Shown: positions 23,884 through 46,780, counted from the whole stretch's first letter. The stretch: 61,723 nucleotides of DNA, filler included, from Choristocarpus tenellus KU-1152 (GCA_964200185.2; 9 parts of 9 records of this genome joined end to end with filler, not necessarily neighbours in it); one strand, 5' to 3'. The notes: generated by a model not told the origin, from the sequence alone. Program-made: numbers and translations.

Positions 23884-25133
23884 NNNNNNNNNNNNNNNNN
23901 NNNNNNNNNNNNNNNNNNNNNNNNNNNTTAATTAATTAANNNNNNNNNNNNNNNNNNNNNNNNNNNNNNNNNNNNNNNNNNNNATCTCGCCGGGTTTATC
24001 ACCTTTATCCTCTTTGATGATTTTGGGGATACCTTTACAGGTCTCTCTCTATGATCTCGATGCAAAAGAGCACAGATTGCCTCACTGTGTGCACTAGGTC
24101 ACGTCAATGACCCACACTCGAGATCATGGCTTCAGTGTCGCTCTCAATGACCTTGGAGCTATACAAAAGAGTGAGGCCGGCTTACTGTGTATCACATTGT
24201 GTCAATGGCATGTGCTCCAGACCATGACTTCAGGGTCTCCCTCTGATAACGGGAAGCCCTCTAGATTACGAATGTGGTCGCTGTCAGCACTACTGTTGTG
24301 CGTTCCATGTGTCCCGAGTTTATGTAAAGCGCATTCCACATTTTTTGCAAAGTCTTGTCGTCCATTGGTGCTCTCACAGCTTATTCGCGCTCTCCTGGTT
24401 TGCAATCCCCACTGTTGTGTGCGGAAGTAACCAGGATTTGATCACTCCCTACTCAGACGTAGACTTGCGCTGTTAGCCTTCTAGAAGGATGGGGGGCTAA
24501 GGAAAGACAAGATGTGCTTTCTTTGTCACCCGTAGGTACCCTTGTCAAGAAGGTGTGATACTAGGAGAAAGGAGAGGTGACAGGATACTCGGGCTGAGTA
24601 ACTTGAGAATTAGACTGAAGAATGGTGGGGCAAGTAAACATTTCCAGTCTTCGAGAGCAGTAAACAAGAGCAAACTGGGGGTGGCAAAGGGGAGGGGGAG
24701 ATTGCTACATATGGATGAGTGGGTCACGGTACCCTACTGGATCTGGTTCCAACAAGGAGTCTTGCTGTGATACACCGTGTACTTCTATGTGATTGTGAGA
24801 CATATTTTGTGTGCATATTTATTTGCATCATATTTTTGACAGAGGAAGTCTTTGTACGACAGCACACTTTTTCTGTGCTCAGCCAGTACTAGGAATCCAC
24901 AAGGAGAACAGTAGAATCACCCTGTGCCTGAGTGATAGTTGCGGTGGCGATGCAAGAGACAAGTCATGGATAGTGTACAGCAGAAAGGGAAAGGGTGAAG
25001 GCACGCCTGCAACATAATTTTGTCCATTAAGACAAGTAGCAATTTCAAGGTGCGCCATGCATACTGGAGATTCTTGGTGCACAAAATATCGAGAAAACTG
25101 AGTAAAAAAATATATATCTCTATTCAAAGGTGT

Positions 25134-25395
25134 GAGCGAACGAAAAAAAAGGTAACCAGTTCTTGCCCGTTTTGCATTTGAAGCCAGTTTTTCAATCTTT
25201 TGCAATTCACCCATACAGTATTTCTATGGATGAAGTGCTAAGTTTGACTTGAAAGGGTTTGTCTTTTGTTTGAAAGATTTCGACATAATTCGGTAAATAT
25301 CCTATACACAATTTTCTCACAAAAAGTCGAATTTTGCACTTATTTTCCGATATTCTTAAAATTCAACTGTGGGTACCTCTCGCTTACGTTGACTG
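25134..25395. mobile_element. MITE family C (degenerate)
   Basis: End gggtacctctcgcttacgttgact and internal ggatgaagtgctaa shared with 40033-40292. Confidence 0.65.
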
Positions 25396-26698
25396 TAATA
25401 TTATTCTTGTGCAAAGAGTTGATGTCTCCTTAGATTGTTAACTCAACAGTTAAAGCAGTCTATGAAACTCTCGAGAACTTGGACAATCTCTGCTCGTGAC
25501 ATGAAAATCCAAAGAGATTTGTGACTATATAATAAAGTTGAGGGAGTTTGCTCCTCAGAGTGGTCTCCACTAAAGTGTGAAAACCCATGCTTTAATGAAT
25601 AATAAAATGTTACAAGAAAAAGTAAACGTGCATAAGAAACCTACAGCACACACATCAAAAGCTGCAAATGACCACTAGTCACTGGGAGCGATTCAAAATA
25701 TATTCGTTCTAAATATTTTTTTGACCATTGAGTCAAATTCGTCTGGTCTATATGCTCCAGTGTATCATATACTACCATTTGCCTTGAAGGGCCACGACCC
25801 AGACGGAGAGCCTTGTTTTGCTGCACGGTTGCTGGACCCACATCTCTCCTAGATGTATCCACACAAAATATACATGCAAAATGCACTCTGCACACAAGAG
25901 AGTGACTGATTTAGCGATTTTAAACTCCTGCTTGCTTCTAAACAGTATGAGTAGTATGTACATGCTGTGCCCTTCTACTGTTTGGATTTGCGAATTATTG
26001 CAGATCGAGGGCCAAGCATACAACATACCAGAAAGCAAGAAAAAGTGGATAAACGCATCAGAATATACATGTGTGTTACACATGCTGACAACGGAAAAAA
26101 ACACAACAAATCGCGCTGTACTCTTGGTTGCAAACATTTACTCAAGCGTTGTAATTTCATTCAAAAAACAGAAAAAAAACGAACACCATTGGTTATTGGC
26201 AACAAAAAGTCAAAAGGGTGCAACAACAAAAGGTCTAGTCAACCATGCACTCCCAAATGCATCATTGCAAACAGCTGGCCAGGCAGAAACAATATTTGAC
26301 ACATGGAAACGTATGTGAGTTTATCCAGTGTAAGTTCCATAAACATGTGGGGAGCTACTTACCAGTATATTTCAAATGGGAATTAAACATATAGATAGTA
26401 GTAACATAACTGCAACATGACATATCGTGTCACAACAATAGTACAGACATTAGAACCATCTATGCATAGGAGAATGACATATTGCCAACACTCATATGTA
26501 TTACAGACAGGAAAGACACCTATTTGCCCACCTGATACACTGGGTGTAAGTACGTACAATGCAACAAGAGGACACACCAATATATAGTACACACAGCAGT
26601 TTAATACCCAGGCACACATGGTTGAGTACACGTGCCTACATGTGTGCCTTTCCTATGAAAGGCAAGAACCTTCTCTTGTGATTATGGTAGTCCAACAA

Positions 26699-29600
26699 TC
26701 AGTCGGATTGGTGGCCTCGACGAAGCTTCCTCTTCAGCTTGTTTCTCATCCCCCCCTCCCCAACTAACCCCTCATTATCGTTGTCCTTGCCTTGTGGTGA
26801 AGACACCAACTTAGTCGGGCTCTTGCTACTGACTTTCCCTGCATCCTCAGATAATGCCCCAGACTTCAATCTCTCCTGGGCCACCATTTCCTCTCTCAAC
26901 CACCCAGCATCCTCCCCAACATTGCCAGCTGCTCCTCCAGTAACTTCAGCAACCAATCCAAATCGCCTTGTGTAGGCATGGGAAAGATTACTGCGCATAT
27001 CTTCAGGTGTGAGGGGGACAAGACCTAGCTCTTCCACTCCGCCCTCCTCACTTGCATCCTCAACCTGCCGGGGGTGCCGAGGGTTTCGTCTGCGTCCCAT
27101 TGGCTGGGTGCCCAGAAGACGTGTTGTTGCTTCAATACCAGATGTGACCTTGCTTGTCGCTCCCAAAACACCTAACAGTTGGCAGAGAAAAACAAGAGAT
27201 AGAGAGAGGGTCAGTTGGAAAGTACTCTAGAGTAAATATACCGTAAATGGTATACCATCCACCCCCCAGGTCCGCTGCAAAGGATGCTGATGTTCGACCC
27301 TCTCATTAACAATATAATTTGATGCATGTGAAAAGGTTCTTCGATTTCAACTTGCTCATAAATCAGCATTCCTGCAGGATAATACGTCGACAAGAATCTT
27401 GAATCTGAACAGGGGGAAGCTGAACAGAGGGCTGACTGTACAATAAGCTTCTATGGTACACTAAACACAGCTGCAAAATTTCTCACTCAGCCCTTCAACA
27501 CCCATTTCAGCTCCACAACCTCCGAATACTCACTGTGAGTTCTACAGGATTATTGGAGGACTGCCTGAGAGTGCATTAATCCACAAACCAAAACATTCTT
27601 GCTCGTAGATTCACAATGCTCAAGATAAGTGAAAAACAATGTACTTCTCAGTTTGGGGTGGGTTGAATGTAACCTTAAGCTCCTGGTGCAGAGCTGAGTA
27701 AGCTCAAAGAAGCAAGACATCTAGCTTGATTACTCTTCCTCCTGCAATCAATCTTCAATAGAGGATGAGCCCTAATTTTTCCTCTAAGTTTGCAGAGATT
27801 GTCAGATAAAACGGGGAGTTGTTTGAATCACCTATATCTATAAACAAATAATTGTGAACCTGAGCGTTCCCAAGTGGGCACATTTAGCATTTTAAGCTTG
27901 TCATGTGGATGTGAAAAAAAGGGTGAGATTTCTGAAAAAAAAAATGAGCACCCCTTATGGCCATTATCTGCGGTGACAAAGTAAGAAGGCAATTTGCTCT
28001 ACACTATGCTACCTCTCTTGGTATCTGTGCATGGGGGGGAGGGCTTAAGGCCACCACCCTAGAGGGCAAGAACTACTCAAACTCAAATAGATGGCTTCGC
28101 TTTTTCTGGATTATGTATCTCTCCCCTCTCTCAACCCTGCCCTGTGTGCTTGCTTGTGCATGAACACTTAAATCTCACGAAAACAACACAGCCCCACTGT
28201 CTCACTTGAGATTCTGTGCATTTACCTGATACAGGTGCAGCTGCAAGTCCCACAACACCCTTGCCCACCCCCCTCATGAATCCCACGGCGCCACCCTCCT
28301 TGGCCCCTTTGTATGGTTTTGCCAAAACACCTTTCAAGCCCTTGGCCATGGTCACAAGGAAGTAATTGGCACCTTGTGCAACACCATGCCCAATGTGATG
28401 AACAGCTCTCTAATAAGACAAGCGCGGAAGTAGAGGGTATGATGGGAGAATCAGCAAAATGTTGTAGTCCATCAGGCTTAGTCTTCTCTATGTCCATTCC
28501 TATGATTCTTGCCCCAACTTGAACTTTGCCACCCCACGGGTGGCAAAAGTACTCGATGCACATACACACTAGCTTGAGCATTAAATAAAAACATTCCACA
28601 GTCTGGCAATAGAAATTCATCCAGCACTATCCCTTATTTACCACATTTCCTCTCTCACCTCTTCTCCTTTACCACCCTCCAGGTGAGTGTTCACCCAGTT
28701 TGATGAGGAATCAAATGGCTCATCAAGTGCTCCTGCTTCTCGCACCAAGTGGTCAAGAGCTCCTGCCACCTTGCTAGCACTGTTTGCTGCCCCACCAACA
28801 ATACCCTGGACAAGGGCTGTTGTGCCCTCCTTTGCCTGTCCAGTGCCGACCTTGAGTGTATCATAAGGCAGTGGGGAAAAGTATTGTGTGGAGAGGGGAA
28901 GTAGTTTTATCTGCCCATGCACAGGGAATTGACTTCGCTCGCTACGACAAACTAGAACTAAACAATCTTACAGACTCTATCAAATTCCCATCTGGGCAAT
29001 CTTGAGTGCTCATTTACGCCATCTGCATAACCTAAATTACATATAAAATTAATTTTGAAGCTAGTACGAGCAAAAAATTCCTTTTCAATTGCCTCATTAT
29101 CAAACCCAGACATAGGACCGCAATCCAATCCAACCCCTCTAGCTGCAAGCATAAAATAAGCTGCTTGTAGCGTAGAATTTCTAACAGCAGTATCCAGTGC
29201 AACTTCACCAGAGGATGCAAAAAATTTAATATTTTGTTGGCACCCAGCTGCATCGATTGTCACTGTGTTGTTTTTTAGATTAAAAGATTCTAATAATAAA
29301 GGGATTGCTGTTATTTCATTTGATTTGCTTTCTATCTGTTCTTCTCCTAGAATTAAGCCATTTTCATGGCACCAAGCGCTGACTGAATGTAAGTATTGAG
29401 AGTTTAAAGTTCAAACAGTATACTTTAAACTTAGCTCAATCTTGTCTCTAGAATCAGAGCACAACATAGCAATTTAACAATGCTTGCTACTTAAATAAAT
29501 TGTATATTTTTATAATGAACTGAAAAAATCAGACAGTAAAAAGAGTAGTTTTGTTTCGCAAACGATATAAAATCAAAAGAAAAAACAATTAAATATATGA

Positions 29601-32600
29601 CAAAAAAATATATATTATTAAAAAATTTCACTGCGGAATATAAAACAAAGGTAGTATTAGAGTTGCTAGAGTCAGATGTTACAATCTCGCAATTATCAAA
29701 AAAATATAAAATTACGCCAAAGATTATCCAAAATTGGAAGAAACAATTTTTGAGCAATGCGTCAATGTCATTTTAGCCGGCAAAAGTAGTCAGCGAGTAC
29801 AAAACAGAAATTGAAAAATTAAAGTCTCATTTGTCTTGATTTTTCAGTCCATTATCCTTTAATATCACCAGATAATAAATCTGATAACCCTGTAGCTGTT
29901 GCATACTTATTTTGGCAAATTAATAGTCTGAATATATGTCCAGTAGCTTGCTTCCCATTCTTAACTTTCAATTTATTTTTATACACAACATTTTTACAAT
30001 TTTTGCGCAATTTTTTCTATTTTTGCGTAAGGTGAGTTATTAACTGTACACTAAAAGCAGAGGGATTGGATCAGGATATCGTTGATTCGATCATTAAAGA
30101 TTATGACCTTGAAAAATTCCTAACACAAAAAGAATCTATATTCATAAACGCATCGAATCCAAGTCAACATGATAAGATCCAGTTTATTTGGAGAAATGAA
30201 TCCGCACATACTTTACTTTGGTCAATTGAGCACAATATTGTCAAGTTTCAAATTAATCAAAACCGGCCGGTTTTGGACACCCTACCCTGCCAGCAATTCC
30301 AAATATGAGCTAGAAGTCATAGTAGACCGAGTATCCAAAATAAAATTTTGGTAGAGAAATAGCTAAAAAAGTAGCAATATTAGTATAATTATGTAGCATA
30401 ATATAAATATTCACAAAAAATATTTGTATAGAATTATGCATTCGAAAAAGCATCTGAATTTTACAGCAATAAGGAACATGATAGCAAATTTGACTACTAT
30501 ACAAGACACCAGGATACACACCCATGCAAGGAAGGCACATCAAAGTAGGATACTGAACTGGAGTGCTTGTACTGAAATAGAGGAATGTAGGAGCAGTTAA
30601 GCATGGAAAAAGGTACAACAGGTAGAAACAAGACGAGAATATAATAATCATGATAGGTTTAGCAACATCTGCAGGATCTCAGAAGAAAACCCTAATCGGT
30701 CCTTGTTTATCGTTCAGTTATAACATTGTATCACCTTAGTCACAAATCTGAATACTCCGCCAGAGATGTTCTGTGTAAGGGCCAAAGGATCACCCAGTAT
30801 GTCAATGTGTCCCACAACCTTGTAGACCTTAACAAAAAAAAATTGGCTAGGGCGGGGTTGGGACGGGGGGGGGTGGATGGTAGGGGGAGTGACGGGGTGG
30901 CATAGACAATCAGTCAGCCACATGGACGATGGGATACAAATACGGAATATGATGGTGAGGGAAGGGATGCTGAAATTGGGAGGGTGCAGGAGGGTGGTCA
31001 TTCAGAGACGATCATGACAACAATTGGGATGCTCATAACCCACAAATCCCTACCCACCCACTCCGGCATACTTGAATCCTCCACAATATAGGGCTCATGC
31101 AACTCCAACAAAACGGGTCATCTGCCCTTCAGAAAATTTAGAACACAATCCACAACATTACTGTGAGAGAGAGGTCTGGCAGCAAACAGTCGCTTTTGGA
31201 CCCTTACAGAGAAAAGAATATACTCGTACACAGGTCAAGACAGGTACACCACAGTACACAAAATGGGCAAAATGACTTGCCAGTTGCAGCACCGCCCAGG
31301 TTCACAGAACCTTGGCAGCATAGCATGCTTGAATGGGATGTAAGTAAGTCTGTTAACTATAATAGAATTTGGAACAGCTCCAACAACTTGGAGACAGACG
31401 TTGGACAAGCACTTGCTGTACATACATTGGAGAGGAACAGAGCAAGACCCATCTCACCTCAACCCCTACACACGTACCTGCTGGATGCCTTGTCTCTCCA
31501 GACTCTCGACTACAGAGTCAATCAGCCTTTGTGTACTGCCATAGTAATTCACTTTAGTGTGGCTATCAAACACAAAGGTTGGAGAGGCATTGGCAACACT
31601 CCTCCCCAGACTGGATATCAGACCCCAGGCAACTGCTCCCAGTGCGGATGCTGGAACCATGCTTAGTGATGCACCCATGCTGACCTCCTCCTCCTCTTCA
31701 TCTGGTGAATCTTTCGACAACATAGCCAGTGCCTACAGAGTGGAAGATTGAAAGGTAGGGAGGAAGGAGAGAAGGTGTTAAAGATAAGGGGAAACAGAAG
31801 GGCAGGCGAAGGGGGAGTCAACGCACAGAACTTGCACTCACTGTCAGGTTGAGAGTAGCTACAGACCAGGAGCAGTACATGGGTAAGGAAAACACCCCAT
31901 CATCTTGCCTTTCTTCCGAGGTGAAAGTCGACGGCCAGCATCAGCTCTGATTGGGAAAAGGCACCGATGAAAATTGTGGAAGCGCTAACATCCTCCTTCA
32001 AAAGGTGTAGCTTAGATTGAACCATGGCATTCATCTCCTTCACAGACTGGAGGCGTACAACCTCAGGGCCAGCACTGGTCCAGTCAAGGGAAGCCCATAC
32101 TACTTCCTAAATATTAAGTGTTTGTGTACCAGAGAGAGAGGAGTGAGACAATGTTGGAGACGGTGACTACGTGTGTAGGGTGACGAAAGAAACACGAGGA
32201 CGGTGATTCATAGGGGGCCTTGAGCAATGGTTTACTAAACCCAAATTGGGTGCGAAGGTGGTATGGTCAGTGTTAACAGCATCAAGAAAGAATTGGACTT
32301 TTGTGGTGGAATATCTGCAAAGTGTACAGGGTCAGTTCAAGTCCAGGACTCAATTGAAACACACTGAAGTCTTGTAAAAGTGAGTGAGATAGGTATGTCA
32401 CAAAAAAAAAGGGAGACAAAGGAATTGCAATTCAAAACGTGTTCATGGTTGTGACCTTTGAGATCCTCATCAACCAAAGTAGGTTAGAGAACACGAAACA
32501 AGTGAGGAACAGCAGCGATGGTAGACAAAATTCCTTTTTCATAGCTAGGTCAGAATTTCCATGATGCAGCAGGTTGAGTAGGAGCGATGAAACTGGGGGG

Positions 32601-35600
32601 AAAGGGTCAGTGATAGTGAGACATCTTGTATGGTTGCTATGGGACCATTGAGCAAGTCTCTTGCACCCCAGTGAGTTGTCTTCCGATCTTGCTTTTGTGC
32701 ATTCATTTTTTGCGTGTAAACATGAAGTCAAACTCGGGTTCTAATATCTCCCCCCCATGCGCTCAATGTTTTCCTTGCCTGTAGCCCCATCCAATAATCA
32801 ACGAACACTGCACATTGCATTGCCGAGATCTTGGTATGCACATCACGGAGCACTGCCATTTTATGTAGGAGGCCCACCCTCACGTCACGATCCACTTCAA
32901 CCTGAGGGGAAGCGCAGTGATGTAGGCAAAGATATTCAATGCTAGTCAGTCGCAAAGTAGAAGATAATCTACTGCAGTTGTGACAGCAGGTGACAGGAGG
33001 GGGATGCAAAGGTGCAACCCTTAAGATTAACTAAAAAATGTCTGTTTGAGCGACAAGGTTGATAGAAAACCACTAAAGAGTGAAAGAGTCTTAGAGATAC
33101 GAGTTATTCCCTTTTTTGTCCATTTGGGGCTTGGCTTCCCATGGGTTTTTAATGACATTTTACACTCCAAAATGTTCCGGAGTAGGTGAAATGTGTATGT
33201 TGTGAAAAGGCGTGTCCAGAACAAGGATATTGACATCTCCTAACATATATGATAGGCAAAATTACAACAAAATTGCAAAATTTGGTTTTGGTCCCCAAAT
33301 GGTCCCGGCTCTACCCTTTAAGATACTTTGACTCCAAGTTGCAAATAGTTCCGTAAGAAATTGCACTTCATCCTTACCAAGTCTACATTTTCACAGTTCC
33401 CTCTACTTGCCACAGTACTGTTGACCATCTAGGCCCCTACTAGGTAGAAACGAGGTAAATTGTGATGCAATCCCTCAGATATTCCCAACCCTCCTTTCGC
33501 ACCTCTAGCATTGGGGTTGCCACATCCCGACCATCACTCGTCTCAGCAATGTGGCTACTAAAACCGGTCTCAATCGGCTGCAGAATAACAGGATGCTGCG
33601 ATCCAGGTCGCATATCATCCAGCTATTTTTTGTAGGGAAGATTGGCAGGGGAAGTAAGTTGGTAGCATTCAGCTGGATGAAAAAATATCCCCATTGCAGA
33701 ATCCTTGGGGTACAAAGGTGCAAGATACTCTAAACAATTCTACAGATGGGCATGTATCTCACTTAAATGCCTACCGACATAATGAAGTTGCAGAATCTCT
33801 GTACAACATGCACCTTCCTGCATCAGATTCAAACCACACTCTTATACACGGGTCAAAATGAACATGCCACTCATTCTTTCCCTTGAAGACCTGTATGTGC
33901 CACACGCTAAGGGCTGATCTCTGGGTTCCGGCTGGCTTTCCATACTCCAGATGGTCCACAGTCAGACTCAATAGCTCAGTTGTCCCACTCAATGAGCTCT
34001 GTGCGACATTGACCACAAGGCCCATCAGCCGGGCTTTCATCTCAACGTTTTCCCATATTTGTGCAAACAAGCACATCGCCTGTGCTTCTCCTACCCCCAG
34101 CCCCATCTCCAAGTCGCCAATGTGGAGATCACAAAAAAACACCATAGGGTAACACACCCCGAACGGTAAGGAAGGGTGGGGGGATAATTTTGGGGGAACG
34201 TGAGGGATATAGGGGTTGGCATTGCAGTTTACAGTAATCAGCGTGGATGAAATGGAGATAGGGATTGCAGTAACCATGTCACAATGCTAGTTTGTGAACG
34301 TTAACTAATTCCTGAAGAAATGGATGGCTAGGTGGGTGGGTGGGAGCATTTCATCACTACCCTGTTTATCACGTGCATTCCTAGAGAGAAAACTAGGGTA
34401 GGGAATCTTGCTTATCCTTGTGACAGAATTTTCCCATGTATGAGTGACAAATTGTTTGATTTGGTGGGAGCAGTAGGAAAAAGAACTGCCAGCGGGCATA
34501 TTTTTCGTCTGCCCAAGCTGCTATAAGATTGCCTACTCCTCACTGTTTTTTTGTAGTGTTCAGCAATTAAATAGAGAAAGGGGGTATAAGGGAGTTGGAA
34601 TGCTGTTCCTCGACCATGATATATTCTACCTGAGTCAAAGTATCTCAGAGGGTAGAGTCGCGTCCATTTGGAAGCCAAAATTCAATGTTGCAATTTTGAT
34701 GTAATTTTGACTATCATATTTGTTAGGAGATGTCAATATCCTTGTTCCAGACACACCTATTCATAATGTATACATTTTACCTACTCCTAAACATTTTGGA
34801 GTAGGTTAAATGTCATTAAAAACCCGTGCGTGGGAAGCCAAGTCCCAAATGGACAAAACAGGGCAAAACTCGTACCCTCTAAGATACTTTCACTCACCTC
34901 AGACATTATCCGCCGTACACCTGGAGGGTCAGCATTAGCTCTGTAGACTCCCCCATCGACCCCATTCACCCCGTGCAGGTGCTTGTGATTGGAGGCATCA
35001 GTGTCAACGCCCCCTTCACCTCCCTCTTGCTTTGGGTCAGAGAAAACAATGACCTAGGAGAACATTCAAGGTATGAAATGAGGTGGATTAGTTATGTTAG
35101 ACCACTGACCAGGCAATGGATTGGGAAAAAAAGTTGCAAGGGGGTGCCATTGAGCAGAGAGGAGGGGGGTAGAGGGGGTTTCAAAACATAGGGCAACTCG
35201 TTCATAATGCCTACTGGCGCGAATAATACAGGTCAGTGCATTCAAACTTCCTGGGACAACACCACAGGCGCACAAGCTCCAACCTCCCTCCTATTCAGCC
35301 TCCTTCCCCACCTGATACTATGTGTTACACACAAAATTGTCCTCTTGTGGAGGGGCTTCACAGTGGCCAGGTTGATACTCCAAAAAAATCTTGTTCCAGT
35401 CGTCAAAGTTGTACCGAATTAGACTGCTTGTATGATGTGCAAGATGCTATTGCGATACACCCCATACTCTGGATCCACACACTTTCACGTCAACCTCAAA
35501 CATACTCCCTACTATAGAAAATATCTAGCGTATTTAAAGTCCACATCTTGTTTCCTCAAGAGACACTGGTACCCATACAGTATACTATGGAGCAATTACA

Positions 35601-37500
35601 ATACGACCGAAACACTATATCAGATAGGTGTTGGTAGGAGTGAGAAACCTTCATATATCCTCTGATATTACTATGTACATGACAAATGACTCCTATAACC
35701 CCTATCAATATATCGATTGGACTTCCTTTATCTGTCCAATGATATCATGAGCCTTGCAGCACAGCTAGTGACAGATCAATAGCTCCACCATTCAGTACAG
35801 ACATCTGCTCAACATTCACCGGGTGGTACAGCAATAGGATCTTGAATCTACACCAGCTCTCCATTTTTTCAAGGTAACAAAATTCAGAACTTTGGTTTGA
35901 GGTGGTTACAGCAGACAAAAATGTACTCCAGCATACATACAATACGGTGTATGTTTTTTAAAAAAGGAAGGGAAGGTTCAACCGCCTACCACCCCTCATG
36001 CTTTGCAGGAGTCTCCAGACTAATATAATGTTTTCCTGCTGTTCTATGTTTGCCATTTTTTCTTCTCAAGTGTATCAGTAGCAAACTTACCACTGTACTG
36101 ATTTTTTCCGGGTGACGAAGGCTTTCAGCTTGGAGCATGACCCTGTTCTGGAACATTAGGTCAGGCAACCGTCCAATGCTGTCAGGAGCGTACCTCTGCC
36201 CAGTAAAGGTCTTCGTATCCACCACAGCGTGTGGTTTGCTGATGGTACCCTTCACCTCACCTATGCCCTGGTCCTGGACCCCACCTTCACTAACATCACT
36301 AACATCACTCACATCATTCTTGTTGACAATACTCATTCCACCAACGCCACTAGAGCCACTGTCTTTGCCCCACATTGTTGTATCGACACTTCTACCGGCT
36401 ATATTCCTGCCACCAGAAGAGAGTCTTGGCAGCAAAAGATGGCTGGGGGATACGGAATGAGGGAGGTCCTGGATGGCTCCCTGGGCTAGGGCATTGGGAT
36501 CTGGATGGTCAACTTCGATGAACCTGATTTACAGAAGTGTAAGGTAACAGGGGATGGGATCAAATAAGGTAGGCTAAAAGGGGGGTGGAGGAGGAAGAGG
36601 CCATGGGAGGAGTGGAAGGGGATGGGAAGCAATGGTGGGAGCAAGAGCTCTAGAGAACGTGATACTAATGACACTGAATCCTCTCAATATCACACCTAAG
36701 CTATAGAGATACACACACTTGAGTCAAAGTATCTGGGGGCGTGTGTGGCGGCTGTCCATTCGGCGCCAATTTTTCCATGTCGCGATTTTGTTTTGATCTT
36801 GACATCATAACACAGTCCACACAAATCCAAGTGCTAAGAACATAACCAAAGTGCAGGATATTCCATACTTCAAAAAAACAGGGCCACCCCTGAAGACACT
36901 CAAATAGATCATTTTTCCAAAATTTGGTCCGGGCCCGAATGGACACCCTGGACTAGACCCTCCCTCCCCCCACGGATACTTTGACCCTATTTCACATAAT
37001 AAGCAATTCCCAGCATCGTCCCATGACTACAAAGGAGGACAAACATCAACACACGAAAGTTCCAAATTCTGACGAGGAGGATTCAGTTGTTATCTATTAC
37101 AAGTAAACAGCGGTGGACGGACTACTTGAGGAAGATGTATCCGCCAATCAAATGCACACAGGCACATGGGTAACTGAAAGGTCATATACAATACTTGTAC
37201 ACATCCATACCAGAGTACTTAAAACACACCTCTCGTGCTCCTGGTGCCAGGATGTAGCATTCCATCGCATGGGCCCCAGCGATACAACCTCTCCTCCCTC
37301 ACCCCCAACACGATACATCAATGAGTGGACGGATGATCTGTTTTCCACCCGAAGAGGCGGACGCATGGTCTCATCCAATAGTGTTAAGCACAGTGTTGCA
37401 CCATTGCCAAGGAGAGAGCATGAGCAGCGTACCAATACATCCTCAAATGCCCCCCTCAACAGCCATATATATGACTCCTTCCGATATAAGCAAGAGATTA
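26699..37500 (-). CDS. VPS13: VPS13-family lipid transfer protein, 3' part. Resolved exons: 33622-33503, 32901-32779, 32106-31909, 31732-31478, 30827-30735, 28850-28695, 28409-28226, 27171-26699; more upstream
   Basis: VAB/SHR-BD-like PPLRVENRS...SW (about 37240-37480), HIQ|LDDMRPGSQHPVILQP, VYKVVGHIDILGDP, and the Gly-rich C-terminus GVLAKPYKGAKEGGAVGFMRGVGKGVVGLAAAPVSGVLGATSK. Resolved exon lengths and phases are consistent. The upstream boundary is approximate. Confidence 0.9.
28958..29228 (-). pseudogene. Bacterial RutE/YcdI-like nitroreductase, C-terminal fragment
   Basis: RNSTLQAAYFMLAARGVGLDCGPMSGFD...FF...NFICNLGY...RLPR.EFD..C is the malonic semialdehyde reductase-type signature; the N-terminal half is missing. 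Confidence 0.88.
29229..29395 (-). mobile_element. ISAs1-family transposase fragment
   Basis: LHSVSAWCHENGLILGEEQIESKSNEITAIPLLLESFNLKNNTVTIDAAGCQ carries the ISAs1 motifs KSNEITAIP and TIDAxGCQ. Confidence 0.92.
29516..29851 (+). mobile_element. Internally deleted IS3-family element with both IRs and a broken orfA
   Basis: IRs TGaactgaaaaaatcagacag / ttgtcttgatttttcagtcCA; HTH orfA FTAEYKTKVVLELLESDVTISQLSKKYKITPKIIQNWKKQFLSNASMSF*PAKVVSEYKTEIEKLK; orfB absent. Confidence 0.82.
29862..29960 (-). mobile_element. IS701-family transposase N-terminal fragment (frameshifted)
   Basis: MGSKLLDIYSDY[fs]ICQNKYATATGLSDLLSGDI matches the recalled IS701 N-terminus (LD.Y.DYLI....TATGLS.LL.G.ISHD). Confidence 0.7.
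30051..30228 (+). pseudogene. Bacterial DUF4272-like protein fragment
   Basis: KAEGLDQDIVDSIIKDYDLEKFLTQKESIFINASNPSQHDKIQFIWRNESAHTLLWSI resembles the DUF4272 pattern (T..E..F.....P....I.F.WR.E....LLW); recognised from memory. Confidence 0.65.
33078..33334 (-). mobile_element. MITE family A (VPS13 intron)
   Basis: Reverse-complement homolog of 507-764; no clean TSD. Confidence 0.85.
34632..34895 (+). mobile_element. MITE family A (VPS13 intron)
   Basis: Both TIRs present; TSD ACCT at 34628-34631 and 34896-34899. Confidence 0.92.
36721..36987 (-). mobile_element. MITE family B, longer variant
   Basis: gagtcaaagtatctggggg / ggatactttgaccc ends; internal catgtcgcgatttt as in other B copies. 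Confidence 0.8.
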
Positions 37501-37869
37501 GAGTTAGGAGAAAATGTAACATCAAGGATAGCGCTTAGGGGAGTTGGTGGAAGAGATATCGATTGACAACACAGACCATAGGTTACCATTATGCATTAAT
37601 CCCTCTTCTTCATCATATGCTCACCTGGTGTACAGCCTCAAGCGAGACAGCNNNNNNNNNNNNNNNNNNNNNNNNNNNNNNNNNNNNNNNNNNNNTTAAT
37701 TAATTAANNNNNNNNNNNNNNNNNNNNNNNNNNNNNNNNNNNNNNNNNNNNGATCTAAGCCCCAAATGGACAAGCAGGGAAAAACTCGTACCCTCTAATA
37801 TACTTTCACTCTATAGGCACAGATGCCTACAAGTTCGGGAGGGTTGGGTCTATCCTCTATGAAGCATCA

Positions 37870-39270
37870 CCAGCATGCAGCCTTTCTAAGATCACTAGTG
37901 GCTACTCTCCCCACCCTTTTAGCACGGCAACTAGGGCCTCTTTGAAAATCTTCCTCACAAGCCATCTGTATGAGCCCCGCAGTAAGGGCCTTGGGATCAT
38001 CGATTCACACCATCCTCTCGACAGGAGTCCCTTCAGAAGACTTGGCAGAAATTATTGACCAAGGCTGCGTAGCCTGGGGGGGAGGGAAGAGCAATCCCCA
38101 CAGCCGCCCCAGAGGTCCACATTCTGGCAACCCATGATGCCAGGATCACAAGGAGGGCACGGCACAGGATCACCCGCCTCCTAAACAGGATCTGCTTCTA
38201 CTCTTTCCAGACGCAATTGGCCGACTTACCTCACAAAGCAGAACAAGGGAAATAAAGTTCCTTGCTAGTCCTGACCTTCCACCGGAGGCAGTGTGGACAA
38301 GGGGCGAATGCATGGGCCTCCACATAACCCCTGGAACCAGCATGCCAGATCCCTCCCGTAGAGTTAGACTCACGGCCAGGGAGGGAGGAGGCCCTATCAA
38401 ACAGGTGCCCAGTGTCTGGGTGCAGGAGACATAATGTGGACACTAGATTTGCTCATACCTGCCCTATAGCAGGAGGACAGGTCCACCAAGCGCAGTCATG
38501 GTGAAGTGTCTAGGTCAAATCTGCAAAGGAATGGGCACCTCTGGTACTATGGAGGATACTAGCCCATTCACAGTGGACCGAAATTTCCGCATGGATGTGG
38601 TCATCCATGCTGGGGCACTTGTGGACACCGGATCAACTCCCTATGGCAACAAAGGTCTCCTCCAAGATGTTACGTTTGTAGAAGTCCAAGCAGCCTCCCA
38701 TTTTCCACACTCATCCACCAGCTATGGTGTAGCTTTTTCTCCAGGTGAGGTGTGAAAGTACACCCACTACGATGACTCTTTTGACCCTCGTAGTTAGAAC
38801 CTCAACACCTTCGTGGTGGAAAGTATTGAGCACCTCAGTAAGCCAGCAGAAAGGTTTCTGGATAAGTTGGCTACGCACGTGGTAGGGGGGAGAAGGGCAG
38901 GAGGCTACGGCAGGAAAGGGGCTGTCAAATCCCGTGTATAACAGGTAGTGCTGTCACAACACAAGTGGCTCTATCAAGACGTGTGTAATGCGTTTCTAAG
39001 CTGGAGACACCAGGGAGATGGGCAAGTAGGCGCTTGTCAGATTCTTTGGATGCTTCCCTAGCTCCTCACCTTGGGGTGCAGGACTAAGCTAGGTTGGAGG
39101 CATAGGAGGGCAGTGGTGTAGCATAGCTGGTAGTCCAAATAGTAAATAGATGATTGAATGTCTTTCACGTGTATGACAACTGTTACTTTTTCAGGGGTTA
39201 TTCTGGGATTGGCTTTTCATCAGTTTTCCCCCTGACACATCTGCAAAAATGTCCGAGGACATTGTAATAT
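37870..39270 (+). mobile_element. Degenerate 5'-truncated RLE-type non-LTR retrotransposon with 3' UTR
   Basis: Zinc knuckle CPVSGCRRHNVDTRFAHTC, then RLE motifs PFTVDRNFRMDVV...LLQDVT...K..HY..SFDPRS...FVVES...FLDKLATHVVGG..G...RKG, interrupted by stops and frameshifts. The 5' boundary is approximate. Confidence 0.82.
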
Positions 39271-39904
39271 AATACCTCCATCCATACAATACGCAAACAG
39301 ATTTGTTATGTGGTACGGTGTACGTACGGTACGAAATGTTTAGGACTGTACGGTACATTATCCACTTCTAGCTGCCTCTTCCTTCTCGACAGGTGACTCC
39401 TAAAGCATTTGTCTCCTGCCGTGTCTTCAGACAAAAACGCGAGCTCGATCTCCCTCAAGAGAGGCACGTGGTAACTTTCTATCTGCAGTCTTGGAAAAAA
39501 CACCATCTGTGCGCCTGGTGCAGTAGCACAATCTTTCGGTGTAGATCAAGGAAGGAGAGCTACGTCTAAATACATTGAAGTACTGGCCTGGTCATCCCGT
39601 CATAGATAAATGATAAATCACCCACCTTCACAACATCTCTTTCTTCCCTCACAACCACTATGCAGCTGTCACTGTAATTCGAGGTACTAGCCATAGATAT
39701 GTCTGCACTAATTCACATCATCCACAAACGGCATTAAGGTTAGGGCTTGGGTCGATTTAGAGGAAGGGATATTTGTGAGAATATAAAGTCGGTTTATTCC
39801 GCAAAAATACTTGCTTGCTGATAGACTATGATTTGCTATCTCTCAAGCGTGGTCAGTGCACCGAATGGGCAGGGTGTACTTGAACAAATGGTAGAGTTGA
39901 TCCT

Positions 39905-40409
39905 GAGTCAAAGTAAACGAGAGTTAACAAGAGTCGCATTATACGGATGCTGACAAATATGTCCAAAATTGGACTTTTTTGCAAAGATGCATAGGTTATG
40001 TTCTGACTTATATCGGAAACGTTTTGAACAGAGAGGCAAAGTAAACGAAAGGTACCCAGCGGTTTTGGGAGTTTTGCACTTAAAGCAATTTTTTATATCT
40101 TCGGTGATTCACTCATATTTCTAGGGATGAAGTGCTAAAATTGATTTGAGAGTATTGATTTTTCCTTTGTTTGAACATTTTCGACAGAATGTAGAAAATT
40201 CCCTACACTTATTTTTTCAATACGCCTAAATTTCCACAAATTTCTCAACATAAAAAAATGTAATGCTGTATATGTCTCGCTCACTTTGGCTCAGAATAAT
40301 AAACACTCTCAAGTGAAAGTTAGAACAGAAATATGTGTGAATTGCGTAAGATTGACAACTTAAAATGCAAAGCCGTCAAAACCTGGGTACCTCTCGTTTA
40401 TTTTGGCTC
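39905..40409. mobile_element. MITE family C with a second family C copy nested at 40033-40292
   Basis: Outer TIRs gagtcaaagtaaacgagag / ctctcgtttattttggctc; inner gaggcaaagtaaacgaaaggtaccca / tctcgctcactttggctc. The outer halves rejoin to match 59459-59718. Confidence 0.78.
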
Positions 40410-43247
40410 TCATACCCATAGATTGTTCCTCAAATTGTTGTCAGCTGTACAGTCTCGCAGAAACAGGAGGCATTTAATCTCTGCCAAGATCTTGGAACCA
40501 AAATCTCTCTGCTATGTGGTGTGGATACCGTAAGTGCTATCCATTGGTGTACTGTAGATACACAGATTTACTCATGCAGTTAGTTCTCCAGGTGTCTACT
40601 ATCGTGGGGGTTGGAAGGGGATTACCATTGATGCAACATCTTGCCGCTACGCCAAGAAGTAACTTCGGAAAATTGAAGGTTACCGGGTATTTTGCCTAAG
40701 AGTGCCTGCAGTAATACCACTCCCTTTTCCTTAAGATCCTCCCTTTACATACACAATTTGACTCCGTGGACCCTGCTGTATCTCTTCAAGGAGGAACTGC
40801 AATCTACGGACCTAGGTCCTTCCGTCCACCCTAGGCATCTAGTTCTCTACTGTTAAGAATTGTCCGTGAATCCCGTTAGTGATGTCATATTGCTTATTTC
40901 AATAAGTCGCCATGGTGAGTCAAAGTGTCATGTCAGAGGACTCACGTTTTGATATTGTGAGTCAGCCCTCGTATTGGTTGTATTTCCCTGAGGTTCTAAT
41001 TCATATTTACTTCATGGATACCATCACCAGGCACCAACTACTTGCAGATTACGAGTTATAGTAAAGGAGTGTGTGGGGTGCAAAGATAAAGTCTGTGGCT
41101 TGTACGCCGAACTTACCGCTCCATATGGGCTACACATACCTCGGCTGCCGAAAGATTCAAGTAGAAGCTGTTCCCCACTGATCGGTGAGGTAGAAGTGAT
41201 ATCAAAGAATACCTTCAACCGTTCAAACACAATACTTCCATTGACTTCTTCTCCCTCTCCCTTTTCTATATCTTTTCTCTTTTCCTCTCTAAGTTTCGAT
41301 CACTGGACAGTTCTGCAGGCATTGCACGATTGCAAATACTACGCTACCATTCGCGAGTCGTCTATAGACAATCCTCGCCGTTTCTACGCCGAATGCTCTA
41401 CTCACCTTCCAGGTTTGCTCGGTTGCTCGTCGTCTTTGGTGCAGAGGCTGTCGATGTTTTCCGATTATATGAGGTTGTGACTGTTTGTGGTGTTGACATT
41501 GACTGACACTCACTCCTGTTCCTTCGAACCGTCAATAGATCTACCGCACTTGGTTACTCCAGGAAAAGGTATACCACGTTTTGCCTACAGAACCACCACC
41601 TAAACAACGATGTTCCCCTCTTCTTCCACTTTTTTGCGACACTTCTTGTGTCTATTCTCCAAGCACCTCTTCACATGGGTACCTCTGGTTTCATATTTCG
41701 GCAGGATCAGTCCAGGCAATATGTTGCTCTTTTTTTCGTGTTAGGTTGGATGCTTATATTGCAGAACACTGTCGCCTTCGGAGTATGGTCCCCATCATCA
41801 GAATCAATGACTTTACGCCCCCCTCGAGCGATTGGGTTCACGTCTAGCCTCCACTCGACACATGTTCCGTTAATCGATGGCGAATTGACTTTACTGTGCT
41901 GTGGTAGAGGGCGAGATCTATCGACATCGCGGGCTTGGAAGTCAGGCTTCAAGCGAAAGGTGCTAACTACTTCCATCACAACGATTTCGAGTCATGTTTG
42001 AAGCACTTGTAGGGCAGGTCCTTGCCGTTGCAAATTGCTGTTCATATTTCCCGAGGATGCATACCTTTTCTAACGTATTGATCGTTTGTTCACTAGAGTA
42101 TTGGTAGGGGACGCCTGGATCGATTTTTTTTGTATTGGTTCAAATCCTCCCTGTATCTGTATTGTTGCATAGATGGTGTTGGCGTATTTGGTGTTTCCTT
42201 GGCGAACTGTAGTGATGATCCCTGTTGGAGTGGTTTCTGTTGAATGATTGTAGAGAAAGGGGGGCTAATAATGCTGCAAGGCGACCGTCATTGGTGTAAG
42301 GTCAATGCTGGGAAGTGGTCTCTGCTCTCCCAACTTATGTGTCGAATCCCCATCTCTCCCAAATCGTGATACCCAGCTTTTCTGGTCGACAGTAGTGGTT
42401 CATGATAGCAATTACCCGGTGCATTCAACTCAGCAAAGAGGACTTGTCGCTATGTCAAGGGGGATCGAAAAGTAAACGATCCCCAACTCAGTGACAGTTC
42501 GTCTGCCACTCAATTGTTGTATATCCTCGACTCCTCGTACTCCTTGCCGAGACATAGCATTGCAGCCTTGGGACGGGCTCGAGCGTTGCTCCTTCTTTAC
42601 CTCTCCCTTTATTGTTGCCGTACCTACTTCCCTGCTCGCTCATATATATGCCTCCAGGTTGTCGTGTTCCATTCAACATGGATTTCGATTCTCAGCAATG
42701 CCTCGTAAAACATGAGAACTCTGTTCCAGGACAAGAACAAGCTTCAACAAGCTGAATAGTGTACTGAATTCAAAGATACACGGGGAGATCGTTTTCCCCA
42801 TTTGGTTTCCTTACGACGACTCACACCACTTTCGTTCGTCCCACGCCTTCATTCTCCCCTACCAATACACGAACCTCTCCCCTCACATCAATTCACCATC
42901 AATACCGACTGAAGATTATTCATTAATGGCATCATGGATATCCACCAGATTTTAGGTCAAGGTCCCAGCATGTTGCCTATGCTCCCGTGCTGTGTTATCC
43001 CTTGCTCCTTCCCCCTTGACCCAGCACCATCAACTTCCAAATGATTCTCCCTTTGTCTCCCACTCTCTAGGTGCCCGACTCAGTTGTCACCTTACTGCCA
43101 CTTCACCTCGCCCGGTGTATGCTAGATACGCACCGCCCTCTACAAAGGTAGCCCCAGCCTTCTTAATACTAACTCTCCCCTCCCTCCCCTCCCACCCCTC
43201 CCTCCCCTCCCTCAACGGTCTTTAAATTCATCCATCCAAAGCCTTGT

Positions 43248-43598
43248 ATGTCTGCTGGCAGATCCCTTTCTAGTCTTGCCACAAAATCACTAGCAGGGGT
43301 TTATATTCCCCAAACAATTGCATCAGTGGCATCAGTGGGAACAGTGGGGGGAGTGATCGCAACGGCCTCTGCACCTGCTATCACCTCTTGTTTAGTGCCT
43401 GCTGCTCTTCTGCAGAACCAGCCTTGTTGGTACCTGTGGATGGTACTTACGGCTGCATCAGGAGCAGGTCTGTGGTCAGAGCGTACAAGATGGGGGGCAG
43501 CACTGAGCTCTCCTCTTGTCACCATGTTGTTGACTGTCACAATGTGCAACCTTGGGCTGGTACCTTCCACTTCGCCAGTGTATGATGTCGTCAACAAG
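43248..43598 (+). CDS. Exon of a DUF819 (YjcL-like) membrane protein; 5' boundary uncertain
   Basis: W..W......GLWSERTRWGAALSSPLVTMLLTVTMCNLGLVPSTSPVYDVV is the DUF819 N-terminal pattern; donor AAG|GTATAG after 43598. Confidence 0.78.
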
Positions 43599-45879
43599 GT
43601 ATAGTATGTATGATTTTTTATATAGAGGTTTTTTTAGAATGACAAATTTTATTTTTGGTGCTTTTGAGTTATTGCTGAGAAGATTGTTGATCTATCACTG
43701 TAGATAGTGGAATAATGCTACTAGGTTGGATGACAAAGGATGGGATGGTGATGTGAATGGGGGGAGGGGAGGGGGCTTGGATCATGTATAAGCATTTGTT
43801 CTTTACAGGTTTGTTCCGGCTTGGTTGTAATTGTGGTCGTTAAATGGGTGCTAATTGTTGTATCACCTCCACTGAGTGATACCGTTTCACATGCATAGAA
43901 TACTCCTGTGCCACCCAGGGCTCTTGAACAGGTTGAGACATTTTCGTACTTCCTGATAAGTTGCTCTAAACTGCAGTTCATATGAAAATGCTTCACATGA
44001 CTGTGATTACCTCTCATTCAACCAAAAAAATCTTGCTGCCCAAGAGAAAGGTGATCCATCATTGGTCGGTGTCAATCTAAACCCCAGTCGCTTTTCTTAA
44101 GCCTGTACCTATTAACCAGACTCAAGGGATATTTTATTGCAAATATATATATTTACATATGAATATATATATGAATTCCCACAAGTCTATAAAAATAAAA
44201 TAAAAAATCGCTAGCTGCTACAGGTTAGCTTTTTCCTCTGCTCATTGCTGTATATCAAGCAGTCTGCCATACACGAGGAAAAAGAGAAAGAAGTATCTCT
44301 TTGAACTCCAACGCTGAGCAGAGTGAGAAGTGCGTAACCTCCTGTGGCGTATTAAAAAAAAAAAAACTGCGGCGCCAAACGAGCACACCTTCTTCAACAT
44401 TGTAGGGACTGGGGCAATGCTCCCAGCCGTTAAAGGAAATCTTAGTTCCTCAATACAATGGTGTGTCAACCACCCACTGTTCAAAATATTTGGTTGAAAG
44501 CCCTGAAGGATGGAGTGATCGCGTATGTATGTACCCGTGGATCATATCAGTGTACCCTCGATTGTAGTTCCCCTGCCTCGAGCAATCTCATGGAAGCCTT
44601 TCTCTTTTTCCTCTAAAGAATGCTTGCATGCCGTGATTTGTTGAGAGTTATTTTATTGGACAGTCTTGCAACCTGTAGCCAACTCCTGTTCCCCCCCCCC
44701 CCCCCCCCCCCCCCTCCCAACATACTTGTTCGTCCGTTTGCTTTTTTTAGTAGGAAAGCGAGAGGANNNNNNNNNNNNNNNNNNNNNNNNNNNNNNNNNN
44801 NNNNNNNNNNTTAATTAATTAANNNNNNNNNNNNNNNNNNNNNNNNNNNNNNNNNNNNNNNNNNNNCCCCCCCAGATAGTTTGAGCCCCATGCCCTAATA
44901 ACCCTGATGTCCTGAGGATATTGCAAAGATGCCTCCAACTTGCCTAAATCCACCCCCGCTCAGCTCTGATATGAGCCACTCTGACGCAGACACAAAATCC
45001 ATGAATTGAACACACATCCAATGGCGTCCAAAGTCTTCTCTCCTAGCCTTTCCTGTTGCTCCCCCTAACTCCGTAGCGAAGTGTAGCCTGCAAGGAGTGG
45101 GGGCATTCTGTTGCTTACTGTGTAGATAGCGCCGAGCAAGAGGAAGGAGCAGTATATGGTCGACTCACTGAGAAAGACGGGGAAATCTACCACTGCAGTA
45201 GTACACATTACAAAAAAGGGGATTGAATATACACAGAGGCAAGCACACTTACAAGATTTCAACTGCAAGCACCAGTATACTTTTCCAGTCTTTCAACAAA
45301 AACGGTTTTAGGAGACAAGAGAGGCATGGGGAAAGCCAGCATTATTACTCATTTATTATTATTCAAACCTGTACCATGAAGAGGATAACATATTAGAGCA
45401 CCCTTGGAGTACTAGGGAGAACCTAGAGTGAAGTCTAACCCCAGTCAACAACGAATTAAGAGACAATTACTTACGAATTAAGAGACATTGTGGATATTGA
45501 CCAAGATTTGGGTGTTCCTCACGATTATTTTCGGGTTATGATGCGACCACAATGTCCGAATATTTTACCTTGAGAGTGGTGGCTTCCTCTCCTGCCGCAG
45601 GTACTGAGTGTAACCCACTAAGTGAAGGCAGTCTAGGATGAGGTCCATCAAAACCAAAGAATTGCCTACAATGGCACAGGACACAGGACGTTATATCAAG
45701 TAGAGATTTAGGGCAAGTATGGTCGGTGTTGGGGTATCGACAGAGGTCGTCTAGGTCTTGGTCCATGTTTGGGGTTTAGTATGCTGAAGTTAGGTGACAG
45801 TGACTCTGTCCTGATTGGAAAAAAGCATCCAAAGCGAAACACCAAAAAAGAGGTACACCTTTAAGTAATGTAATATTAC

Positions 45880-45958
45880 CGGTAACACCGACTGACTTCG
45901 TAACCGCCAATTTTTCCTGGAGTTCCTCTTCCTCTTCACAGACTCCAAGTCTCTTCCC

Positions 45959-45997
<39 letters not shown>

Positions 45998-46415: not shown

Positions 46416-46614
46416 CTTTCAGGCAGAGGAGGGAAACATAAGGTGTCCGAGAGAAGTGATGCGCACACGTGTGCATTTGGGAATTGGGTAGGATGAGTTG
46501 TATTGAGAGCAAGGGGTGGGGAAAGTGCCAGCACCTTCTTTTAGTGTCTATGGAGATTCTACAAGTTGCAGTCTTCATGCCTTCAACTTTCAACCGAATA
46601 CATAAACTATTTAG

Positions 46615-46741
46615 GACCCAAAGTATCTGTTGGGGGGGGGGGGGGGGGGGGGAGAAGTATACAACCAAGGGTGTAAGTGGGAAAAAAAAAAGGAAAAGGG
46701 AACTACAAAATACATTTGTAAAATACAACAANNNNNNNNNN

Positions 46742-46780
<39 letters not shown>

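Follow-up and report, generated by a model that had tools for sequence, protein, structure and literature searches.

Bacterial DNA of probable Rickettsiaceae origin in a spliced VPS13 intron of the brown alga Choristocarpus tenellus

Introduction

How does a block of bacterial DNA come to reside within an intron of an algal nuclear gene? The question is raised by a locus of Choristocarpus tenellus KU-1152, a member of the earliest-branching brown-algal order. The window, that is the whole stretch of DNA analyzed, measures 61,723 nucleotides, filler included, and joins nine records of assembly GCA_964200185.2. The piece at 23984-37651 is one whole contig of this assembly, CAXNAD020001412.1 (13,668 nt), and hosts part of a VPS13 gene. 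One intron of the gene contains an AT-rich mosaic of a RutE-type reductase gene, insertion sequence (IS) elements and other fragments. A first-pass annotation, made from the sequence alone, had viewed the mosaic as shredded DNA of an intracellular bacterium, ligated into a chromosome break. Choristocarpus tenellus was sequenced in the Phaeoexplorer project from non-axenic cultures, by short-read assemblies and contig-level decontamination; the project text carries no mention of Rickettsia. Three points are at stake: whether the block is part of the chromosome, which bacteria donated it, and whether the mosaic was made in the nucleus or in the donor. The reading favored here, with a probability of about 0.8, is that of a recent, non-functional insert of ~1.56 kb, which was donated by a marine relative of Megaira within the Rickettsiaceae and resides in a pre-existing VPS13 intron of ~324 nt.

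Results

The VPS13 gene and its enlarged intron

The exon at 28224-28409, on the minus strand, is 100% identical to the annotated Choristocarpus tenellus protein CAM9290264.1 (P0139; 620 aa) in a search of representative proteins, and the gene model of this protein corresponds to window positions 26699-34906, minus strand. Exons were searched singly, next to the annotated protein; five of them were concatenated solely for checking frame continuity. A search of PDB sequences aligned P0139 with the C-terminal region of human VPS13A (E 4.5e-23) and VPS13C (E 2.4e-19), and exon 28224-28409 alone matches VPS13C residues 3512-3569 (E 3e-7). Pfam gave no match for single VPS13 exons or for P0139, and the exon at 31906-32106 has no match among PDB sequences.

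The intron which hosts the block has no N and is flanked by in-frame exons, as the first-pass annotation had proposed, and features GT...AG ends on the minus strand. Its removal is documented by an RNA-like sequencing run (X3), in which a contig of depth 479 joins 28850 to 30735 and omits 1884 nt. Contigs of this run skip four segments (28410-28658, 28851-30734, 30828-31475 and 31730-31905), the CT..AC ends of which on the plus strand equal GT..AG for a gene on the minus strand. Deprived of the insert, the intron would measure 324 nt; the other introns shown by RNA measure 249, 648 and 176 nt. The enlarged VPS13 intron is still spliced out correctly.

The block at 28945-30504 has a GC content of 31.5%. 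Values are higher in the remainder of the intron (40-47%), the three other introns (43-50%) and the exons (46-55%), which agrees with the AT-richness noted earlier. GC values are low in all its pieces (27-37%), and measure 33-35% in the fetched Rickettsiaceae loci. The left limit falls at ~28945-28956, since homology to Rickettsiaceae stops a few nt past the RutE stop codon. The right limit, at ~30490-30504, is marked by the shift in GC and by the end of a repeat contig (30319-30504), and is uncertain by ~15 nt. The block is slightly wider than the limits of 28925-30460 first assigned to it. The block is bacterial DNA within a nuclear intron of a brown alga. Its components are listed in Table 1.

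Table 1. Components of the bacterial block and its flanking VPS13 exons (window positions)
Feature	Position	Strand	Remarks
VPS13 exon 3' of the intron	28659..28850	-	RNA joints; part of P0139
Spliceosomal intron, 1884 nt	28851..30734	-	GT at 30734-30733, AG at 28852-28851; RNA joint
VPS13 exon 5' of the intron	30735..30827	-	Joints 28850>30735 and 30825>31476 in the RNA run; open, 31 codons, in frame with the next exon
Inserted bacterial DNA, ~1,560 bp	28945..30504		Delimited by GC content (31.5%) and homology
RutE-type malonic semialdehyde reductase gene, 3' part	28958..29230	-	Last 89-90 codons and stop; no internal stop
ISAs1-family transposase gene, internal fragment	29228..29411	-	~Residues 92-152; NF033564
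Unassigned AT-rich stretch, 26.9% GC	29412..29515		Left flank of the mini-IS3
IS3-family element, internally deleted (mini-IS3), 336 bp	29516..29851	+	Both terminal inverted repeats and first ~78 OrfA codons
MITE-like element, right ~170 nt	29875..30047	+	Conserved 26-27-nt terminal repeat at 30017-30043; left end missing
DUF4272 gene, internal fragment	30048..30230	+	Pfam PF14094, E 1e-11, profile 49-112 of 208
Unassigned AT-rich stretch	30231..30504		Includes a repeat of the sequencing runs (30319-30504)

Integration of the block in the chromosome

Logan contigs of four runs were placed on positions 27300-32700. X1 and X2 are DNA runs, X3 is the RNA-like run mentioned above, X4 derives from a second organism. 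In X1 a single contig (4,122 nt, depth 19.3) follows 27300-29352 with 0 mismatches, from the exon and the host segment of the intron into RutE and part of the ISAs1 fragment; at the right flank, the contigs 30460-30845 and 30889-32700 have depths of 18.3-18.5. X2 contigs cover 28916-29352 and 30460-31260, and have the same breakpoints as X1 at lower depth. The X3 contigs 28824-29199 and 30006-30327 carry 0 mismatches and have depths of 5-6, versus 150-480 for the exons, which is the level expected of pre-mRNA. Contigs 29786-29891 and 30006-30327 span the IS3/MITE and MITE/DUF4272 junctions with no mismatch. No VPS13 sequence was found in X4 at >=85% identity.

RutE is covered at the same depth as the host, and this piece is therefore single-copy and nuclear. 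Both DNA runs, at host depth, and one RNA run have contigs which bridge the junctions; the block is therefore not an assembly chimera. A lack of spanning sequence and a jump in depth had been named in the first-pass annotation as signs of a chimera; DNA contigs bridge at the host depth of 18-19, and the insertion is real.

The middle of the block behaves differently from its margins. Contigs shatter in the interval 29352-30460, because related repeats are abundant in the samples. Summed contig depths are ~1,700 over 29291-29471 and 29,000-47,000 over 29834-30195, figures which add the whole-contig means of every partly matching contig, and are not copy numbers. The matching contigs of high depth are mostly 90-99% alike, and the ISAs1-like ones match just an 89-nt core. 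The ratio of repeat to host depth differs between X1 and X2, and the RNA run has no excess over the MITE. In the simplest reading, the abundant repeats belong to culture bacteria which carry related elements, such as flavobacteria. Sequences matching 29677-29815 and 30351-30456 at 60-137x, with 0-2 mismatches, could derive from a living relative of the donor.

The RutE fragment

The RutE fragment matches the NCBIfam model NF003768 (E 8.8e-33) over profile positions 112-200 of 200. It scores 113.5 bits, under the cut-off of 152, because this part of the profile is all that has been kept; the piece is a gene fragment, not a gene. Relatives were sought by scanning the frame made by the fused RutE and ISAs1 fragments (see below) against one genome per bacterial species. 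The four closest matches are all metagenome-assembled genomes (MAGs) of Rickettsiaceae: L002 (JALZUG01; 97% aa and 93.8% nt identity), L003 (94% and 87.7%), L005 (87% and 77.5%) and L004 (67% and 80.9%). Ca. Megaera venefica (L011) is 69% identical at the aa and 72.1% at the nt level.

The fragment was placed by a quick maximum-likelihood tree (79 sequences, 88 columns), which has few columns and for which a careful search is unfinished. It groups with L002 in a Rickettsiaceae clade of 5 rows (SH-aLRT, the Shimodaira-Hasegawa-like approximate likelihood ratio test, 98). This is nested in a clade of 19 rows (SH-aLRT 98), labelled Rickettsiaceae, Rickettsiales and, in one row, only Alphaproteobacteria. 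Ca. Megaera venefica is found in a neighboring subclade. Tara Oceans contigs carry RutE sequences identical to that of L002, and 'KOPF15' contigs, which we take to be from Ocean Sampling Day (OSD), carry sequences of 98.5% identity; the donor lineage is therefore marine. The accession JALZUG is mentioned by no paper of the literature searched.

RutE fragment and L002 differ at 17 positions, 13 of which are third codon positions. The dN/dS ratio (non-synonymous to synonymous substitution rates) is 0.05, with a dS of 0.29. By this pattern, the differences arose under selection in bacteria, and little neutral decay followed the transfer. The predominance of synonymous differences and the coding fragments which are still open argue that the insertion is recent when set against the divergence of these bacterial lineages.

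The surroundings of RutE are unstable in the L002 lineage. Contigs of this lineage (L084-L090; 98.5-100% identical to JALZUG01) carry at least 3 different mobile-element insertions in RutE and its upstream neighbor, at L002 positions 2538, 2985 and 3079; the break of RutE in the window corresponds to 3001-3003. RutE is in the course of being lost in the L002 lineage. The elements which break RutE in Tara and OSD contigs show no relation to ISAs1 or to anything else in the window.

Mobile elements and other pieces of the block

The ISAs1 fragment aligns to profile positions 95-152 of 314 of NF033564 (E 5.4e-18; 65.2 bits, cut-off 70), and lacks the element ends. RutE and ISAs1 fragments make one open frame of 150 codons, with a 3-nt overlap between their homologies. 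One join in three would be in frame by chance, and the shared frame is therefore no sign of function. No species-representative genome, among those scanned with a peptide pattern spanning the junction, features the RutE/ISAs1 join. L004 aligns by tblastn to residues 21-150 of the fused frame, but this match was rejected: it is RutE aligned by chance over the ISAs1 part, and not a shared junction. The closest relative of the ISAs1 fragment (91% nt identity) is an intact copy on L023, a 4.2-kb contig binned as Cyanobacteria. The binning is weak, since this contig contains IS genes only (ISAs1 and IS66 accessory-like open reading frames). The fragment is also 80% identical, at the nt level, to the Rickettsiaceae single-cell genome AH-545-L11.

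The adjacent AT-rich stretch 29412-29515 has no blastn or tblastx match against plasmids or any fetched locus. It is followed by the mini-IS3, the first ~320 nt of which are 82.5-83% identical to IS3-type elements found on three Ca. Megaira polyxenophila plasmids. These are the only blast matches of the element among 72,556 plasmid records. The 5' part of the mini-IS3 aligns to 2501-2816 of locus L001, the 3' end (last 27 nt) to 3799-3825 of the same locus, and ~980 nt between them are gone. The ends form an inverted repeat (29512-29535/29832-29855), OrfB is deleted, and no clear target-site duplication is seen. The OrfA part is 85% identical over 59 residues to a Megaira plasmid IS3-type 'integrase', matches the Pfam domain HTH_Tnp_1 with 24.7 bits (cut-off 24.1), and carries one TAG (29774-29776) where Megaira has GAG. 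From its structure, the mini-IS3 would be a non-autonomous deletion derivative. Its intact relative is L097, with 85.5% nt identity. IS3 OrfA relatives in the protein collection are at most 86-88% identical, and none comes from the alga's own runs. A copy of the same IS3 family on the metagenome contig L096 (1759-3094) is split by an IS30-type transposase gene (HTH_38 and rve) at a position equal to window 29606/29619.

The next piece resembles the right part of a miniature inverted-repeat transposable element (MITE). Its terminal repeat recurs in four metagenome contigs (L091 468-644, L094 397-664, L092 9243-9269, L093 73-99); in L091 and L094 it forms inverted pairs with spacings of ~177 and ~270 bp, and the window is 71% identical to the L094 interior. 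Run contigs diverge at 30047/30048 into at least 3 different flanks, and the runs contain many copies of the element. The MITE terminus adjoins a Rickettsiaceae RutE in OSD contigs of the L002 lineage, and occurs also in contigs of the flavobacterium Lutibacter. By this distribution the MITE/IS family crosses phyla. The terminal repeat was also spotted on a 42%-GC contig, beside genes similar to rpsF-rpsR-rplI.

Homology to DUF4272 begins at ~30051, a few nt past the end of the MITE at 30043-30047. By tblastn against plasmids the DUF4272 fragment has distant matches only (36-44% identity), the best of which, 44%, is from Vibrio. A length-limited protein search yielded no candidate for this fragment, which says nothing about full-length kin. 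The remaining stretch, 30231-30504, has no protein or DNA match in Pfam, NCBIfam, or blastn/tblastx searches against plasmids and fetched loci. Its part 30319-30504 reaches a summed depth of 116-128 in X1, versus ~19 for the host. In X4, the second organism of the same study, which is otherwise represented by high-copy pieces only, a 186-nt contig of depth 2.6 is identical to 30319-30504; a culture bacterium shared by the two or carry-over between libraries may explain it.

Four identities given to the pieces in the first-pass annotation are upheld: RutE by NF003768, ISAs1 by NF033564, IS3 by HTH_Tnp_1 and the 85% aa identity to Megaira, DUF4272 by PF14094. Two others had to be dropped. The putative IS701 piece at ~29855-30016 has no Pfam or NCBIfam match (E up to 1) and no tblastn match in plasmids, and the stretch corresponds to the right end of the MITE-like element; the IS30-like piece at 30315-30390 has no match in Pfam or NCBIfam, nor by tblastn in plasmids. 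Stops or frameshifts, attributed to several pieces, are limited to IS3, with its single TAG and its deletion of ~980 nt, while RutE, ISAs1 and DUF4272 are open.

Other features of the contig

Rfam and tRNA scans of the whole piece 23984-37651 were empty. A search for contigs encoding any of three open reading frames of the window likewise had no result. Within the VPS13 gene model an inverted repeat (33098-33334/34632-34874) has arms of ~240 nt which match in three blocks, are 85-92% complementary, and lie ~1.3 kb apart. It may be a host foldback, the remnant of a DNA transposon, or a structure favoring exon skipping or back-splicing. The arms flank an open reading frame (33771-34277) which resembles a VPS13 exon; a protein search with the latter found weak look-alikes of lipid-transfer proteins only.

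Exon 30735-30827 has a G-rich tract (30846-30900) close to its upstream end. X1 contigs break in this tract, and six differences of an X2 contig are clustered there; it is probably a polymorphic or hard-to-sequence stretch of low complexity. A second low-GC stretch (24900-26700; 34-39% GC) contains several open reading frames of 80-166 codons. No bacterial similarity was found in it, and it probably is an ordinary host intron or host repeat.

Discussion

On sequence comparison, a Rickettsiaceae origin is established for the RutE and IS3 pieces, as RutE nests in the Rickettsiaceae and IS3 is closest to elements of Ca. Megaira polyxenophila plasmids; it would be plausible for ISAs1, MITE and DUF4272. 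The guess of Rickettsiales DNA made in the first-pass annotation is thus sustained; a single donor is established for RutE and IS3 only, and would be plausible for the other three pieces. Rickettsiaceae are a family of obligate intracellular bacteria. Bacteria residing inside the algal cell may have released DNA, which would have reached the nucleus and been captured at a chromosome break by end-joining, as are organelle- and Wolbachia-derived nuclear inserts. Most of the patchwork would have been inherited, the donor genome being already scrambled by IS and MITE insertions and by deletions. The insertions in the RutE lineage and the nested IS3 copies indicate a donor riddled with IS elements and MITEs, in which RutE was decaying.

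The location of three inner junctions at mobile-element ends argues that much of the mosaic was made by transposition in the donor, and the mosaic, as its junctions suggest, probably predates the transfer to a large extent. These transposition junctions (both mini-IS3 ends, and the MITE end set against the DUF4272 interior) may be taken as made in the bacterium. At least the segments 29412-29875 and 29875-30230 would each have been contiguous in the donor, and the entire insert of 1.56 kb may represent one continuous piece. A few junctions at most (RutE/ISAs1, the truncated ISAs1 and MITE ends) would need nuclear end-joining or bacterial deletions. RutE/ISAs1, which joins two gene interiors with a 3-nt overlap, could stem from either process, and among the inner junctions it is the only one which looks like end-joining. 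Once in place, the insert would be carried in pre-mRNA and discarded with the intron, doing nothing for the host; no function is indicated for it.

The first-pass annotation had a different view of the junctions: DNA of a lysed symbiont would have been shredded, and at least five distant pieces ligated at one nuclear double-strand break, so that all inner junctions would be nuclear, as in the mosaics formed by nuclear mitochondrial DNA (NUMTs). This account is possible, though unlikely. It is well suited to the RutE/ISAs1 junction, since an overlap of this type is typical of end-joining and none of the species-representative genomes scanned has the junction; internal truncations are found also at the other ISAs1 end and at the left MITE end, and orientations are mixed. 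However, random breakage would rarely produce three junctions which are exact element termini, and it is very unlikely that breakage and ligation reached element ends within a few nt three times. Relatives of the donor are scrambled likewise around RutE, and IS-rich symbiont genomes also produce junctions between gene interiors, by deletion. What survives of the earlier view is RutE/ISAs1; the mini-IS3 ends and the MITE/DUF4272 border are signatures of transposition. That several bacteria of the non-axenic culture or of the habitat (Rickettsiaceae, Flavobacteriaceae, cyanobacteria) acted as donors, in place of one endosymbiont, is improbable. The best ISAs1 match on a Cyanobacteria-binned contig, the MITE terminus in Lutibacter contigs, and the summed depths of MITE- and ISAs1-like sequences (1,700 to 47,000 in the DNA runs, with RutE at host depth) could be viewed in this manner. 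Yet the binning of the former contig is weak, a related ISAs1 (80% nt) marks a Rickettsiaceae single-cell genome, and the same MITE end occurs in the very Rickettsiaceae lineage to which the RutE fragment is most closely related; IS elements cross phyla, hence best matches tell little about the donor, and GC is uniformly low in all pieces.

An artefact, due to the misjoining of a contaminant contig or to a short-read assembler which bridged the exons via repeats, is a highly improbable source of the block. The assembly does derive from short reads of a non-axenic culture which required decontamination, and the inner 1.1 kb are repeat-rich and fragmented in Logan contigs; but in X1 and X2 an independent assembler crossed the left junction with zero-mismatch contigs of host depth, contigs of both these runs extend from within the AT-rich block (30460) into host sequence, the RNA library contains 28824-29199 (exon, host intron part, RutE), and the splice joint places both exons on one transcript. 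Hardly credible is domestication of the insert, for instance to supply co-transcribed small RNAs directed against the symbiont or its mobile elements, as the first-pass annotation had speculated. The insert lies on the sense strand of a transcribed gene, and intronic RNA contigs are found at low level (depth 5-6 versus 150-480 for exons), but this signal is the ordinary level of pre-mRNA, Rfam scans are empty, and besides the 24-nt IS3 ends the insert holds no long inverted repeat that could form double-stranded RNA. With a low-level intron signal as the sole trace in the RNA run, the proposal is pure speculation.

Several observations weigh against a recent insert from a single Megaira-related donor. 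No RutE-bearing bacterium was found in the DNA run at >=85% identity, and the donor itself is not seen in the culture, given that depth over RutE equals host depth. ISAs1 is closest to a copy in a Cyanobacteria bin, the MITE occurs also in Flavobacteriaceae, DUF4272 has no close relative, and more than one donor is possible. All four runs come from one study and possibly are the data from which the contig itself was assembled, and contigs, not raw reads, were placed; the runs are a check on the assembler and, in the case of RNA, on the library, but not on strain or laboratory. Only short, repeat-broken contigs cover the middle of the insert (29352-30460), so that its internal order comes in part from the deposited assembly. 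The right junction is bridged by no listed RNA contig, and the data include neither an empty allele nor the orthologous intron of a sister species.

The insert suggests that the lineage of this alga carried intracellular bacteria of the Rickettsia family. A bolder proposal is that Choristocarpus tenellus carries, or recently carried, a heritable marine Rickettsiaceae endosymbiont which repeatedly seeded the nucleus; the insert would be one of many, and IS-like sequences found at 3-7x host depth would mark the living donor. This is doubtful. If the favored reading is confirmed, the insert represents a dated, recent molecular fossil with almost no neutral decay, and obligate intracellular bacteria would have had access to the reproductive cells of a brown alga that diverged early. 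The insert offers a precise PCR marker for the symbiont, as for empty alleles in other isolates. Contig-level decontamination does not remove inserts of this kind. A patchwork of IS fragments need not imply shredding in the nucleus, because IS-riddled symbiont genomes look that way already.

Comparison with known systems

Insertion of endosymbiont DNA in host chromosomes is a known phenomenon in insects, nematodes and Volvox. The literature searched holds no report of integrated rickettsial DNA in a brown alga, nor of an association of Choristocarpus with Rickettsiales. The unrecognised symbiosis evoked in the first-pass annotation is plausible for this alga; a Megaira genome, however, is reported to have already been recovered from another brown-alga genome project (2023, PMC10132079).

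In mosaic NUMTs and their plastid counterparts (NUPTs), DNA of intracellular compartments is caught at nuclear breaks by end-joining, often in introns, and is often concatenated with microhomology. As in these mosaics, foreign DNA resides here in a nuclear intron (a NUPT example is PMC11110229). Unlike NUMTs and NUPTs, the donor is a bacterium, and at least 3 inner junctions would be transposition junctions inherited from it. Wolbachia-to-host nuclear transfers of insects and nematodes (e.g. PMC4558871, PMC3849323) are reported to be, similarly, pieces of Rickettsiales DNA, mostly non-functional, often rearranged and rich in mobile-element fragments. In those animals Wolbachia resides in the germline, whereas a brown alga is the recipient of the present insert and its donor symbiont is putative.

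Closer parallels are found among photosynthetic eukaryotes. The nuclear genome of Volvox carteri strain EVE contains a rickettsial insert of ~9 kb with four rickettsial genes, reported as the trace of a past infection, the endosymbiont itself not being seen (Kawafune et al. 2015, PMC4324946). Both cases feature Megaira-type Rickettsiaceae DNA in an algal nuclear genome. Unlike the insert of the green alga, the one described here is made of 1.56 kb of gene and mobile-element fragments, resides in a spliced intron, and marks a brown alga (a stramenopile). Its donor, from a marine Rickettsiaceae lineage, shares only 69% RutE identity with Ca. Megaera venefica, the named Megaira of the match list. 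In the fern Haplopteris ensiformis (PMC10027690), Rickettsiales DNA has reportedly likewise been fossilized in a photosynthetic eukaryote, there in the mitogenome, here in a nuclear intron. The Megaira genome of PMC10132079 shares with the present case the link between the Megaira group and a brown alga through data of a host genome project; it is a co-sequenced bacterial genome from another alga and another clade, whereas the DNA described here is integrated in a chromosome.

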